A stretch of DNA of 63,063 bases, the filler included, from Lenisia limosa (lineage: Eukaryota > Protista > Breviatea): assembly GCA_001655205.1 (NCBI GenBank). It is 9 parts of 9 records of this genome, joined end to end, with 100 filler letters (N's around TTAATTAATTAA, not from the genome) between each part and the next. Parts side by side here need not be neighbours in the genome. Positions count along the whole stretch, not along the records: positions 1 to 7,264 come from LPNZ01009147.1; 8 more parts are not named here. The stretch is one strand, 5' to 3'. The notes below the pieces were generated by a model, which saw only the letters and a program-made list of their open reading frames with translations, had not been told where the DNA came from and did no database searches. The number at the start of each line of letters is the position of its first letter. Positions within the stretch are counted from its first letter, which is position 1. This document shows, piece after piece, positions 1-7,264 of this stretch. Position numbers and translations under genes: made by a program.

Positions 1-3000
1 TGGAGGTAGTCCGGAGTGGATAAGATGAATAGGTCTTGGAACCGCCGTACTCGAGAGGCGATGACGTATGGGGCTGCTACTTCGTGGGACCGACTACCTG
101 CCTTCGTAAGGTCTGGCACCCAGGCGACCGCAGGTAGGGTCTGCCCCTGGGATTTGTGAACAGTGGAGGCGACGGCAGGGCCTAAGGGAAACCCAATACA
201 AGTTAACCCTTTCTGCGTGGTAACATGCAGGGGGCGAAGTCGAATCACTCCTCCCGAGCGGTTGTCTGCAGCATAGGGGGAGAAAGCGGCGGGGTTGTCA
301 AACCGAAGAGAGACATACCTTGGTAGTCGGGGACAAGGCACGGAGTACTCCGGTTTCTTCCGGATCAAGCTTGGCCAAGGGAGGTTATGCTTTAGCTTGA
401 GGTGCTTGCTGGAGATGGACACGACAGTCGCTGTAGCACCGTTGACAATGCCGCCAGGAATGAACATGTTGGTGAGGACTCGCACACGCATTGACGGCTG
501 TAGGTGGGCTACGAGCGGGACGCCTTGTATGTTTGCAGAAGTGTAAACTAGGGGCGATTGGGCAATGACGTCTTTTACGCTAATCGACTTATCCGCCAGC
601 GAAAGAGACGAGAGCTGGTGGTCGGGACCAATGGCCTCATTTAAAACGCCTTCTAGCTCAAGGCGGTTGGCCTCTCGGGCAGACTCGGGGACGGTCCTAC
701 GACCAGCCCTGCCTACCATTGATACCGCCGAAGAGACGAAGGCAAAGACTAAACGAGAGTCGGTACTCTCTGCTATGAAATGCCGGCGCAACCAGAGGGT
801 GGTAGCCTCCTCTATGGTTGAGTTCTTTGAGGAAATGTAGACGGCGTGTGGCGGAAGCAGGTTGGGACTGCTGACGCAGCGCGTCCGGAAAAGGTCGGTG
901 TCGGCGGGAGTGCAGGTACCATGGCGGAGGCGATTTAATACGGACGCAAAGTTGGCATCGTCGTTTTGCCTCATGTTCTGGGTTAGCAAGTGATGTGCGG
1001 TGGACGCGAGAAAGGCCGACGAGGTAAACACGCTCGGTATTTTTACGGAAGGCAGTTGGCCGTAGTCTCCGGCGAACACAAGAAGCCGGCCACCGTAAGG
1101 CGCGTCATCGGCGGCACCTGCCAAGGGCAGCTTTGCCAGGGCGTCAACGATGTCGGCGTACACCTTGACGTTAAGCATAGAGACCTCGTCTACGACCACA
1201 AGGCGGATGCGGCTGAACTTCAGGCGAAGTGCGGCGGTGGTTTGTCGGAACCGAAGGTTGCCTGAAGGGCCAACAGTAGCCCCAAATGCGGAATGGATCG
1301 TCGTACCCCCCGGAAGAAGGCCGGCAGCAACAGCAGAAGCAGCCATGCAGAGGAAGGCCCCCTCGTCCCTAAACAAGGCGACGCAGCAGGCGGCAATGGC
1401 CTCGATAACCCGTGACTTGCCCACACCGGCGGCTCCCGACAGCAAAACAGCTTTGGGCTTACCAGCTTGGAGGTAACTACGGGCGAGGTTAAAGAAGGAC
1501 CGCTGTCCCGGGTTTAAGCTGTCCCGCAGGTCAGTCAGCGTGGTGTCGACAGTGTCCAAAGGGAACGGGGGTGGCAGGTCGTCGTCGGCCACATGATCCT
1601 CCGCGAGGTTTGTCGAGACGAGAAACGTTGTTGCCGTGGAGGAAGGGCGGTGGAGGCGATAGCCGGACGGCAGAGGCGATGGGTTCACAACGGCCCGAAA
1701 AACAAGGGCCATTTCGTTGACGAGGGCCTGAGTTTCGTCGGCCTGCGGGGCGTCAACCAGGTCGGCAAACTCCGCGTCGGTGTACTGGTCAAGGTCGACG
1801 GTCACGAGGCCGTCGAGGCGTTCCACTAACCGGCACACCACGGAGGCGAGAGCGACCCCTTCGCTGGTGGAATACCTAGTAGAAGACTGTCGAATGCGGG
1901 GCAGGTGGCGAAGAAAGTCTGCGCGTCGAGAGGCAAGGGGGAATGCTTCTGCTGGCGGCAGGCGAAAGGGGATAAACAAAACAAGTACGGCGAGGAAGAA
2001 CGCGTCGGGGTCGGACTGAGGGTCCACGCGGGTTGTGGACAGAACCGCCGGGCGGTCACGCAGCACAAACACCGACCTGTGACCGGTCTTAAAGGCCTTT
2101 GGAAAGGGTCGGCCCTCGGGCGGGGAGTCGTTGTCGTTGACCACGTGGCGACTGGCCCCAGCTCGCCGGTAGAGGGTACGGAACTCCGCTTGCGACAGAT
2201 GTTCCACCACCGGTGGGCGGCCTCGGTAGACGTCTAGAATTGACTCTTGAAAGACTTCTGCACTGTCGTCTGGTAGTTGCTGAAGGAGGACGGCCGGCTT
2301 GAGAACGCGGTAGTCCGTGGAGGTAAAGCTGGTTTTAACGTATACGGTTTCGTCGCTGGCAAAAACCGGGTCTATGCCGGAGACAAAGAGGGCGGCCTCG
2401 TGGGATCCAACATTGCGGGACGATAAGGCCTTTATAAGTAGGCTGTTCATGGCGGACTTAACTTCGTTGAGGGAGGTGTTCCTGAGGGCGTCGGTGGCAG
2501 CGCGTACGAGAAGGTCGTCCACAAAGGCGTTGTACTTAAGAATGTAGTTGAAGAGGTACGTAGCGGCGCTTCGTGGCTGGGTACACAGCGAAATGTCCAT
2601 GTTGCCTGAGGTCATAGCCAGGATTTCAGGGTGGAAGGGGTTGATGTTTTGGTTGGTGGGAAGGCGGGCAGGGCTATGGGCGTGAGAGTCAAGAAAGGGG
2701 TCAGAACCTGGTAGGAGGCCAGCTGAGTCTATGGGCGGTCTTGGGTAGCCAAACCGGCACTTCCGTTTCTTGGAAGGACGATGGCAGACCTGGCCGTGGC
2801 AATGGGCTTGGGCGGACACGCACAGGCTGCGGAGGTCGTCGCTGGCCATGTCGTTGGGGTTGGTGGTAATGCCGGCGGCCTCGTAGAACCACTTAAGGTT
2901 AGGCTCAAAGTTCGGGTCAGCCGGCGACAGGCTTCGGCCGTTAGTGGACTCCGGCGAAAACCAAACAAGCGAATGAACGTGAACGGCGCCACGGTTTTGG

Positions 3001-6000
3001 TGTTCAAGCACCCAGAAGAGGTGTGACACCTCGAGGCCGGCCCCCGTTTGCGGGTCACGGAAGGGAGTGTCGTCCTTCGTGCACAGCTTTTCAAAGACCG
3101 TAATGTAGCGACGGAGTTGGCATAGGAGGTGAACGGCCGGGTGGTTGTAGGCAATTTCTCGGGCCTCTCTGGCGGTCATGGTTGCCAGGTCCCTTTCGGG
3201 GCAGACGAGGTCGTAGAACTCAGTAAGTCTGCGGTGGGTGCAGGGGTTCATGGTTAAAAACACGTGCGGCATGCCCCTGGCCGCGAATATTGCGTTCAAA
3301 CTTCGGAACCGTTGATTAAAATAAGAAGGCGTGCCCGGAATCCCGAAGGTAATAGTCTCTCCACCAAAGCGAGTAAACCAGTTGTTTCCAGTGAAGGCGC
3401 CGGATGTGGCCTCTTTCAGGGTTCCGGCCGTAAGCGGCTGCTGATTGGGGTCAAGGTTTTCGAGGTCGTTGTCGGCTGCAGGCAGCAGGGCTCGAACGGT
3501 GTTGTTGTCAACGCGCATGGAAACGGCCTCAATAAGGCGGCGTTTAAGCAGCGTAACAAAGGCAAGCATGAGAAATTCGGGCGAAGAGGCAAAAGGCGAC
3601 GAGACTTGGCAAACACGGGTGGCAAAGTAGGTCTCGGGTGTGATGGCAACGGCTCGAAGGTTTGTCGGCACAGGACCGCCTCGGCCTTTTGGGAAGAGAC
3701 ACGGCATCATGACCTCAAGTAGGCCAGGAATCCGGACAATGTCTTGAAAAGTGATTTTCGAAGCGCCATGGAGTATTGAAGCTATTTCGGGGACAGCACC
3801 TCGTACCAGCTGGGCTTCGAGAAGGTCCGCTGGGACAACGCCGCCAGACGGGTCCGCCCCCGAGAGGTTGTCAACAATGACCGTAACAGGCTCGCCAGGG
3901 TCGTCAAGCAGTGACGAGTTGTCCTTGGGGGAGTCCTTCAGTTGTTCCAGGTCTAGGCAGGCCTGGAAGAAGGTACTTCCGTGCGACCAGACCGAAGGTT
4001 CGTCGGAATATGGGACTGGCGGCTCCCACGGGACTAAGGCGTCGGCCGGATACCACTCAGGCGGCCAGGTCCTTTCGTTGCCCAACATTTCGGTCAGATA
4101 GTCCTCGACGGTGTCGTCGCTGGCAGGGCTTTGATGGCGGAGGTTGGCCGGGTCACTTCCGGCTTGTGAAGGCGACGATCCTGAGGCGTGGCTGTCAGAG
4201 GACGACGACGACGACGACGACGACGAGCCCAGGGACGGCACCTCGGGCTCGCGGTCAATTGTCTGGATGGCGTTTGGGAGGAGGGAGAAGGCGGCAGGCA
4301 TGTGGGGATGACTCAGCTTCAGCTCTTCAATGGCCTGTTCCACGCCTTGGAGCTCGTCGGTCGGAAGGGTGAAGCCAGTGTATACGCCTCCTGCCCCGAG
4401 ATGAGCGGACGGCCGGAAGACGGTCCTCGGCACCAGCGTGACTTGTAGGCCTTTTACAGCGATCTGCCCGTTGCGCTGCAGGCGCTGCATGGTCATAAAC
4501 GGGGGAAGGGGACTGACCGCCACCTTACCGAGGTAAGTGAGACCCTTGGTAGCTGGGCCAGGCTCGTCCCAGCCCATGCCGTTGGCAGCGGAGAACTTTG
4601 CCGTGCGCTGCTTTTTAACAGCCTCATAGCAGGGGAAGCATACAGCGACTGCCGTGGCCGGGGGAAGCTGGTCGAAACGGCGGAAGAGCCGAGTGGCTTC
4701 GTCGAACACCGACAGACCGGCAAGGTGGGGATGGACCTCCGCAGGGCCGGTATACCGCTGGCATTGCTTTGGCGATGTAGGTCGACGGCAAATGTTGCAG
4801 GCAACCAGTGGGGGACCGCCCAGCGACGCCAACTTGGACGCCGTGGAGAAGACGGTGGCCGGGGCCAGAGGTCGAAGGGTGATGGCGTCTGCCAAGGACA
4901 AAAACTGGCCGGTTCCAGGTGGTTCGTCCCCTGGCAGCAAAGCGGCGTTCTGCCGAGCAGCGGCGACGGCAACCGCCTCGGCCTGGAAGGCGGGCGGCAT
5001 GTGTTTCGTCAAATGTGACGTGAACCGGGGTGCACCCGGCCAAAGCGGGTCAAGGCGGCCAAAGGCGGCTTCAGGCCTTCCCGACTTAGTGGAGTACAAC
5101 CATCCACCGCGGTCAACCACCAGGAACCACTTGGAGGCACAACCGCCAGCGGGGCACAGAAACGCAGCGTAGTTGGCCGGCTTGCCATCCCTGGTCTTAA
5201 AAACGCGAAGGTCAGTGAACACCAGGGTGCTTCGACTGCCTTGCCTGGCTGTGAGCCGGCGACCGACAAGAAAGGTCAAAGCCGCGTCCGGGAAAAACTC
5301 ACGAAATCGAAGACTGGCAGCCTCAAGAAGCGGAGGGTCAACAGCAATGTCATTTTCGGAGAGGTCTACCACGGGATGTTGGTAGAGTTGGCCTATTTCG
5401 TTTTGGAGAGCGGCGGGCAGGATAATGTCTAACCTTGACGGGAGGACGATACCAGGCGGAAGACCGTTGGCTAGGCCGCGAAACTGCCTTGTTGGTTCGC
5501 CTTCTGGAAGACAAAACACATTCCGGCCGTTTAGTTTGACTATTAAAAACCAGTAGGCTGGAAGGTTTGCCTCGGCGCAGACAACAATTGCAACATTGGA
5601 TGGAAGTCCGCGATGCTGATCAAGGTACCGAATGTCGGCAAACACAAGGGTAGTAGGGGCGCCAGGGTCAGGGCTGTGCCTGCGGCCAGTCAGAAACTGC
5701 AGTACACCTTCGGGTAGAAATTCCTGAAACCTAGCATTGATAAGCGTAGACATCTCAGCGCTGACGCAGTCCGGCAGAACATTAGCCTAAAATACGTAAG
5801 AAAAGAACACACCAAAAAAAAAAAAATCAAGGCAAGAACTGTCTCCCATGGCTAACCGTAGTTGGAGGGAGGTCTTCCTGCAAGGCGGCAAGGCGCACGC
5901 GGGTGGCCTCAGCCAACACTGGAGGAACCCAGTAGTTCACCTGATTAAAGCTCAAACCACCCGGCCAAAGCACATCCAGCTGTGAAAAGACGCTTGTACT

Positions 6001-6376
6001 GCCTCCTGTTTTCGTGTAGTAGACAACGGCGTTGTTAGGGGCCATTGCAAGGAACCACTTCACAGGTGTGTCACTTTCCTTGCACAAGAAGACAGCGACG
6101 TTTACCGGCCGGTCATTTATGAGCTTTGAATACCGGGGGTCACCAAACACAAGAGTCGACGGCCAAGGCCCATGCTGGGTGTGGCGATGTTGCCGGCCAG
6201 CGATGAATTGCAGCGACCCAAAGGGAAACACACTTCGATACTGAAGTAGGGCAGCGTTGATGAGCACGTCCGAAACATGATGCGTTTCAATAGTAGCCTT
6301 AGTAAGTAAACAAGAATATACAACAAATAGGGACTTACCATGGTATGACAGGGCACATGTTCCATTTCAACAAAGC
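1..6376 (-). CDS. Helitron-like RepHel protein (Helitron2/Helentron clade): 3 N-terminal repeats + DUF6570-like Cys region + HUH Rep + PIF1-family helicase; 3' end truncated by window edge
   Basis: Open frame 5786->1; no ORF-track entry in this frame ends in a stop. Predicted introns 5787-5856 (GTTAGC..TTTTAG) and 6298-6338 (GTAAGT..TACTAAG). Motifs read directly: CFPC..KFSAANGMGWDEP..GQIAVKG (~4420-4650); MPCLFPKGRGG; Rep motif 1 GMPHVFLTMNP (~3250); motif 2 VLEHQNRGAVHVHSLVWF (~2960-3015); CRFGYPRP; NINPFHPEILAMTSGNMDI; motif 3 YLFNYILK (~2535-2560). Helicase motifs: Walker A SGAAGVGKS (~1415), Walker B VVVDEVSML (~1180), GDYGQLPSV, LTQNMRQ, FPLGPAVASTVHKSQGQTL, YVIASRVR. The true start codon is uncertain. 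Confidence 0.93.
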
Positions 6377-6660
6377 CTAAAAACACATTAGGTATTATTT
6401 AAAAAAATAACCAGCCAATACTAACACGCACAGTTTTTTTGGTCTGTTTTGTGGGCTATTGAAGTTCGAAAGTAAGGTCTAAAAAGGTGTTTTAGTAGTA
6501 AGTATATGGTTTATTATTAGGTGCAGGCTAGCGGGGCTTTAGCCAAAAACAGTCGGAAAATAAAATCTACAGTCTATTAACATTTCGCGTGCAGTAGGGT
6601 CAAAAATAACAAAGGACTTATAGTCGTAGATGCATAGTAGCGAACGACTCAAGATTAGTA

Positions 6661-7264
6661 CTGAAAGACACAGCAAGGTTTATGCTAGATAAGAAGAGTA
6701 GAGGGCGGAGTCGTAGCGTATCCAGGGTCAATGGGTAGGCTAGTTGAGGGAAGGTTCCTGTGGAATTCCTGGGAAAATCTCGGTGATTTACACAACTTGG
6801 GCGGGAGGAAACTGGTCACACCTGAAAGTCAGCAAGGTTTATGCTATATAAGAAGAGGTGGGGGCGGAGTCATAGCGTNNNNNNNNNNNNNNNNNNNNNN
6901 NNNNNNNNNNNNNNNNNNNNNNNNNNNNNNNNNNNNNNNNNNNNNNNNNNNNNNNNNNNNNNNNNNNNNNNNNNNNNNNNNNNNNNNNNNNNNNNNNNNN
7001 NNNNNNNNNNNNNNNNNNNNNNNNNNNNNNNNNNNNNNNNNNNNNNNNNNNNNNNNNNNNNNNNNNNNNNNNNNNNNNNNNNNNNNNNNNNNNNNNNNNN
7101 NNNNNNNNNNNNNNNNNNNNNNNNNNNNNNNNNNNNNNNNNNNNNNNNNNNNNNNNNNNNNNNNNNNNNNNNNNNNNNNNNNNNNNNNNNNNGGGAGGAA
7201 ACCAGTCGCACCTGAAAGTCAGCAAGGTTTATGCTATATAAGAAGAGGTGGGGGCGGAGTCATA
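6661..7264. repeat. ~160-bp tandem repeat, at least 3 copies, upstream of the RepHel gene
   Basis: CTGAAAG(AC)ACAGCAAGGTTTATGCTA(G/T)ATAAGAAGAG..GGGCGGAGTC(G/A)TAGCGT starts at 6661, 6822 and 7212. GGGAGGAAAC.GGTC.CAC precedes copies 2 and 3. An N gap hides further copies. Confidence 0.85.

Follow-up and report, generated by a model that had tools for sequence, protein, structure and literature searches.

The question raised by this locus is what kind of domain stands three times in tandem at the N terminus of a predicted Helitron RepHel transposase, and what it may do for the transposon that encodes it. The locus lies in a stretch of 63,063 nucleotides from the Lenisia limosa assembly GCA_001655205.1 (the whole stretch is called the window here), of which positions 1 to 7264, taken from record LPNZ01009147.1, hold one gene on the minus strand. 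An initial annotation had described the three copies as an unrecognized domain and had suggested that they might be a catalytically dead protease-fold module. By the comparisons described below, the unit is a real, unrecognized orphan domain without a detectable relative in the collections searched, and the triplet fills a variable N-terminal slot upstream of the conserved core of a very divergent Helentron-type (HLE2) transposase. The three units are as follows.

5869-6276, minus strand: unit R1, 136 amino acids (aa) including the C-terminal helix.
5370-5753, minus strand: unit R2, 128 aa, matched by the hidden Markov model (HMM) of the unit at 7.6e-55.
4935-5339, minus strand: unit R3, 135 aa, with the highest isoelectric point (pI) of the three, 10.3.

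The triplication makes up the first ~440 residues of the protein. The unit starts at 6264, 5744, and 5330 (minus strand), their spacing of 150 and 138 aa once 5856-5787 is removed, and all of the unit peptides quoted in the initial annotation were confirmed in the translation. A unit size of ~140 aa had also been given; the repeated domain itself stood, whereas the length did not, since the conserved core spans ~115 aa (~135 aa with the C-terminal helix). Pairwise BLASTP gave 34.7% identity over 118 aa between R1 and R2 (E 4.7e-18), 38.8% over 116 aa between R1 and R3 (E 4.9e-22), and 37.2% over 94 aa between R2 and R3 (E 1.5e-18). The three-unit alignment has 26 invariant columns, and the motifs said to be kept in each unit (L-x-F-x2-GR, TLVF-x-D-x-R, P-x-N-x-A-x3-C, and WFL) are all among them. 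The invariant polar residues are three Arg and one each of Asp, Asn, Thr, and Cys, amid many invariant aromatic and aliphatic core positions; no His is invariant in the units, and the single invariant Cys precedes WFL. Between units, the proportion of synonymous differences (pS) was 0.69 to 0.78 (i.e., saturated), while the proportion of nonsynonymous differences (pN) was 0.44 to 0.50, which implies that the triplication is old and held by purifying selection rather than a recent DNA duplication. The unit HMM detected no fourth copy in the protein and no match in the nearest RepHel relatives.

The searches for relatives of the unit returned this locus and little else. No Pfam family matched the unit at E<=1 or E<=10, neither NCBIfam nor PHROGs contained a match, and PDB sequences yielded nothing better than E 0.57, with the single sequence as well as with the profile. 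When residues 1-300 were searched against 5.8 billion protein clusters by indexed words, only the protein itself came back. From 1.84 billion representatives, an HMMER profile search retrieved both reading frames of this contig, that of the protein itself and that of exon 1, along with two further proteins, P0003 and P0004; the last two were rejected as spurious, being repetitive proteins that match 17- to 45-residue pieces many times. Matches of the HMM built from the units were thus confined to this contig. At the DNA level, this contig was again the sole match in JGI metagenomes (scanned twice), viral contigs, and GTDB genomes. In the ESM Atlas, the best scores were 0.57, 0.30, and 0.49, far under the level of a lead, and fragments of GT-A glycosyltransferases scoring 0.28 to 0.30 there were discarded because they do not fit the predicted all-beta core. 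These results agree with the initial annotation that the unit is unrecognized. By the same results, neither a zinc finger nor an OTU, Ulp1, or AP (apurinic/apyrimidinic) endonuclease domain is detectable in it, and no confident match to a domain already described in Helitrons was found. As to the fold, two AlphaFold2 models agree only on secondary structure, namely, an N-terminal helix, five strands (LQFIAG, TLVFGD, NVAVFLC, KWFLAMA, and AVVYYT), and then two helices, a short one and one at the C terminus; neither prediction showed the three units to differ in fold. The unit is modeled as an alpha+beta domain in which a helix would be followed by five strands and one or two helices.

The remainder of the protein carries the parts expected of a rolling-circle transposase.

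4752-4799, minus strand: first CxxC...C motif (CNICRRPTSPKQCQRY), a putative zinc finger, following a 45-aa linker after R3.
4422-4646, minus strand: CxxC plus DUF6570-like stretch, at which homology to other HLE2 transposases begins.
2964-3608, minus strand: Rep (HUH endonuclease) domain, Pfam Helitron_like_N, E 9.8e-11.
2964-2981, minus strand: HUH motif HVHSLV, read from the sequence.
2532-2558, minus strand: tyrosine motif YLFNYILKY, downstream of HUH.
903-1517, minus strand: PIF1-like helicase core, Pfam PIF1, E 1.3e-20.
1413-1436, minus strand: Walker A motif GAAGVGKS, in the PIF1 core.
1176-1199, minus strand: Walker B motif VVVDEVSM, in the PIF1 core.

Because the HUH, tyrosine, Walker A, and Walker B motifs all lie in an unbroken frame, the gene product is, as judged from these features, a complete and intact RepHel transposase of a very divergent Helentron-type rolling-circle transposon. 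The helicase part matches PIF1 helicases of the PDB at E 9e-14 and Helraiser (7lcc) at 4.7e-7. Indeed, the downstream Helitron_like_N and PIF1 matches bear out the view that the repeats stand at the N terminus of a Helitron RepHel. The best RepHel relatives among the 5.8 billion protein clusters are only 21 to 23% identical, and those with names are animal proteins with DUF6570; several also have a C-terminal AP endonuclease, by which we assign them to Helentron/HLE2. With Helentron/HLE2 transposases such as P0006, P0007 of Saccostrea cucullata, and P0010, the present protein shares the order of a zinc-finger/DUF6570-like region, HUH Rep, and PIF1 helicase and, within one reading frame, an N-terminal extension that is long and variable. 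It differs in its low core identity, in that its extension is an orphan triple repeat, and in the C-terminal AP endonuclease (Exo_endo_phos, PF03372), which is present in P0007 and P0010, whereas no Pfam match to it was found in 3-4886 or in the precomputed Pfam list of P0001, the protein called here by a prokaryotic gene finder. Not every HLE2 element has the AP endonuclease. The linker that connects the DUF6570-like stretch to the Rep domain contains ten consecutive serines at 4197-4226 (a TCG repeat in the DNA).

The position of the triplet was fixed by profile comparison. When an alignment of P0005, P0006, P0007, and P0010 was compared with the protein by hhalign, positions 4646-4422 were matched with a probability of 92% and E 5.4e-7, although DUF6570 fell below threshold by Pfam alone; the conserved transposase core starts ~90 residues past R3. 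Since this sets the start of the HLE2 core, and since P0010 has two papain-like VTD (viral-tegument-like deubiquitinase) domains N-terminal to the same region, we place the triplet in the slot named above. P0010 is a 2,795-aa Helentron protein (ENA assembly) with tandem VTD deubiquitinase domains at its N terminus (residues 166-392 and 542-752); the two are 52% identical to each other, and the Cys is intact in each, as is the Asp-x-His motif (FDSH). A control VTD alignment matched PDB 8add at 1.5e-36. In P0007, residues ~100-330 show an HW...FDS...QQS...CG pattern, which by eye looks like that of a clan-CE/Ulp1-like cysteine protease; this N-terminal domain was recognized neither by Pfam (E<=10) nor among PDB sequences, and a protein-cluster search for its homologues was empty.

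How much of the triplet is translated depends on the gene model, which comprises two predicted introns in the window.

3-5786, minus strand: main exon, 1,928 codons without a stop, cut off by the low end of the window.
5787-5856, minus strand: predicted intron 2, in the R1-R2 linker, 70 nt, GTTAGC...T-rich tract...TTTTAG.
6298-6338, minus strand: putative intron 1, 41 nt, GTAAGT...TTACTAAG, with canonical ends and 29% GC.
6339-6365, minus strand: putative first mini-exon, MEHVPCHTM, with the only available ATG at 6365-6363.

The same sequence is publicly available as ENA ERZ3820729 NODE_2318 (7,763 bp; L001 below), in which the frame goes on for ~40 codons beyond the window, giving a RepHel reading frame of 1,969 codons. 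R1 is encoded upstream of 5786 in another open frame, 179 codons long (6366-5830). The 70 nt first proposed as an intron have GT..AG ends and a GC content of 34%, compared with 54 to 57% in the flanking exons, and once they are removed, frame 1 continues exactly into frame 2. No ATG precedes R1 in the exon-1 frame, and intron 1 would put the ATG of the mini-exon in frame with R1; the predicted spliced protein is ~2,125 aa. Two further candidate introns lie beyond the window, at L001 7021-7080 (60 nt, GTTGGC...CACTAAC...CAG) and 7114-7153 (40 nt, GTAAGT...CAG), and the two share 80% identity across 50 nt of their 3' parts. In the 60-nt candidate, the branch-point-like CACTAAC contains the stop codon that the prokaryotic gene finder had called, and for this reason the true C terminus may be a short acidic tail ending in ...DIYDEDFV.

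One rival explanation is a protease ancestry, which widens the suggestion of the initial annotation to all papain-like families. The N-terminal slot of an ancestral Helentron would have contained a papain-like protease or deubiquitinase (of VTD, OTU, or Ulp1 type), and the units would descend from it, having lost catalysis and acting now as pseudo-enzymes that bind ubiquitin, SUMO, or a host factor. The slot agrees, given the tandem VTDs of P0010 and the protease-like domain of P0007. Besides, non-viral VTDs occur mostly in Helentron RepHel reading frames, which carry one or two VTD or OTU domains (some elements have two VTDs), and insect proteins are known with two to five inactive VTD copies (PMC9741609). 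The accessory domains described in Helitron-like elements number twenty, most of which bind or modify DNA or proteins, and include OTU, UCH, Peptidase_C48, Herpes_teg_N, and RPA (PMC11417382). On visual inspection, a helix leading into a beta-meander, together with WFLxV..turn..YY, looks papain-like, the strand-turn-YY resembling HW..YYDS of Ulp1/SENP (Peptidase_C48), and with a core identity of only 22%, an accessory domain could have drifted past detection. However, hhalign gave E 0.4 against the first VTD and E 0.5 against the two-VTD profile, in different registers, and 55 of 100 column-shuffled unit profiles scored as high against VTD as the real one; against the P0007 domain the probability was 0.1%. 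The detection of the DUF6570 stretch in the same setting indicates that hhalign has power here. Pfam OTU, C48, and Herpes_teg_N remained unmatched even at E<=10. Although the tandem VTDs of Helentrons (zebrafish DrT1 [PDB 8add], P0010, and the inactive insect copies) are also repeated and N-terminal, upstream of the zinc-finger/DUF6570 region, no sequence relationship with them was detectable, and the unit, at 115 to 135 aa, is about half the size of a VTD (~210 to 230 aa). Furthermore, the invariant Cys stands before WFL and not at a helix N terminus, and the units have neither the Cys...Asp-x-His triad of VTDs, nor the His-Asp-Cys of Ulp1/SENP in the required order, nor the conserved His of OTU. 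The dead-protease suggestion of the initial annotation thus came down to a resemblance of patterns, with profile scores no better than noise, and we consider such a descent unlikely. A quite different possibility is that the triplet is a captured fragment of a host gene, a passenger that is translated with RepHel and has no role in transposition. Capture of gene fragments is frequent in Helitron-like elements (PMC11417382), and the domain was absent from the other known Helitron-like transposases searched. Nevertheless, 26 positions are invariant and the frame is open despite synonymous saturation, which implies long selection either in this frame or in a source gene; no host gene with the domain was found in the same assembly or in the other collections searched; and the GC content at third codon positions of the triplet (0.57 to 0.59) is near that of the remainder of the gene (0.66). 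A mere passenger is, in our view, improbable.

Two other explanations concern the extent of the protein and the origin of the element. R1 might lie outside the protein, as a decaying or separately translated remnant, if 5856-5787 were a frameshifted, stop-containing gap and translation began at ATG 5753, leaving two units. The prokaryotic gene caller did begin P0001 at that ATG, and the locus was in none of the RNA runs examined. R1, however, retains its open frame and all of the invariant motifs, the gap combines its GT..AG ends and T-rich tract with a fall in GC and an exactly frame-restoring length, and similar short candidate introns occur at three other places in the gene, which together make the loss of R1 from the protein very improbable. 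As for origin, the contig is also found as contig 42 (L002) of a metagenome-assembled genome (MAG) named 'uncultured Colwellia sp.' (maxbin2 bin, SRR2018010), where its content is the intron-bearing, eukaryote-type Helitron-like gene only. The GTDB copy, titled 'MAG: uncultured Colwellia sp. ... maxbin2_1', would suggest that the element is genuinely that of a Colwellia bacterium, that is, an intronless bacterial Rep-helicase element whose reading frames are separate. Against this, there is no bacterial gene on the contig, and GC across the gene is 56 to 65%, whereas Colwellia genomes have ~38% GC. The protein shares the zinc-finger/DUF6570 stretch with its nearest relatives, which are HLE2 transposases of animal type. 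Short GT..AG candidate introns, the ten-serine run, and satellite arrays at both flanks also speak for a eukaryotic contig that was misbinned, and automated binning is error prone for a contig of 7.8 kb. A bacterial origin is hence scarcely credible; we infer that the host is an intron-bearing microbial eukaryote, and the place of the contig in the Colwellia MAG is probably a binning error, i.e., a eukaryotic contaminant of a bacterial species-representative genome. Polyadenylated RNA [poly(A)] metatranscriptomes were part of the study that yielded the contig, which fits a sample with eukaryotes. In the one run containing the contig, the gene is present once at a flat contig depth of 75, and no variant gene copies were found at >=80% identity.

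The reading that we prefer, tentatively and somewhat short of calling it probable, is that the triplet is a lineage-specific, multivalent binding module that serves transposition. Since no Cys/His/Asp triad is conserved, the units would be non-catalytic. N-terminal regions of transposases usually read DNA, and RPA-like tandem domains of other Helitrons are thought to bind the element ends or the displaced single strand. In a similar role, the triplet might bind nucleic acid, either the ends of the element or its displaced single strand. The conserved Arg and aromatic residues, together with the N-terminal position, make nucleic acid the preferred ligand by analogy, as a possible rather than a probable assignment. 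The alternative ligand, a ubiquitin-like modifier or a host protein as in the pseudo-protease explanation, seems rather unlikely. Like the units, the RPA-like OB-fold (oligonucleotide/oligosaccharide-binding fold) domains of Helitrons are tandem, beta-rich, ~110 to 130 aa long, and RepHel associated, with conserved aromatic and basic residues. In contrast to them, the units matched no Pfam family and have a predicted secondary structure without a helix between strands 3 and 4; the likeness proposed here is one of function only, in that both may serve the same need. In HLE2, RPA domains precede RepHel and are usually encoded by a frame of their own (PMC11417382). A bolder proposal, which we regard as doubtful, is that the unit belongs to a previously unseen protein family, perhaps with a new fold, that arose or was recruited in a deep, unsampled Helentron-like branch of marine microbial eukaryotes; the triple array would then give a new capability, such as sequence-specific recognition of the flanking tandem arrays or action as a decoy that binds a host factor of silencing or of the ubiquitin pathway.

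Several points weigh against the binding-module reading. The grounds for a binding role, and for nucleic acid as the preferred ligand, are limited to residue types, position in the protein, and analogy, and the net charge of the units is mixed (pI 8.9, 6.8, and 10.3 for R1, R2, and R3, respectively). Conservation was judged among three paralogous units, without a homologue, and the orphan status is relative to the collections searched, to which eukaryotic genome assemblies did not belong. The AlphaFold2 models built with the three-row alignment, one of the 115-aa core (predicted local distance difference test [pLDDT] score, 45) and one of the 136-aa unit (pLDDT, 41), are unusable as structures, and Foldseek comparison of both low-confidence models with the PDB gave nothing below E 0.3. 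No RNA supports the splices: the locus is wholly absent from the single poly(A) metatranscriptome of the same study, and no other RNA run was found. Furthermore, the element is known from one contig, both ends of which lie in tandem arrays, and the ends of the element are off the contig.

The upstream array enters the window as follows.

6679-6878, no strand assigned: start of the tandem array upstream of the gene, ~159-bp spacing, resuming at 7193-7264 past a masked run of N.

This array, which is also found at L001 1-278, consists of direct repeats with 91% identity between copies. Its summed contig depth was 612, compared with 75 over the gene, from which we infer a far more abundant satellite, within which the assembly breaks. 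A second, unrelated tandem array lies at L001 7343-7763, ~270 bp 3' of the called stop, and the contig ends inside it. The unit there is 172 bp, in at least 2.4 copies, with 99% matches by Tandem Repeats Finder and 87 to 94% by direct-repeat comparison. Arrays on both flanks are reminiscent of those carried by Helentrons.

What appears to be new here is an undescribed accessory domain on a Helitron-like transposase of an otherwise known type. Its value is limited by the fact that it is a singleton without homologues, whose structure models cannot be used. On the practical side, the presence of a eukaryote-type transposon contig inside a species-representative Colwellia MAG looks like contamination. 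The finding marks a branch whose transposase is only 21 to 23% identical to the nearest ones returned by the searches, and it widens the accessory catalogue of Helitron-like elements by an apparently intact transposase in which the whole accessory slot is a triplicated orphan domain that has long been under selection. To our knowledge, what accessory domains such as RPA, OTU, VTD, Ulp1, and endonuclease do for Helitron-like elements is largely without tests. If the present domain were a new reader of DNA ends or a pseudo-deubiquitinase, it would show how Helitron-like elements deal with their hosts.

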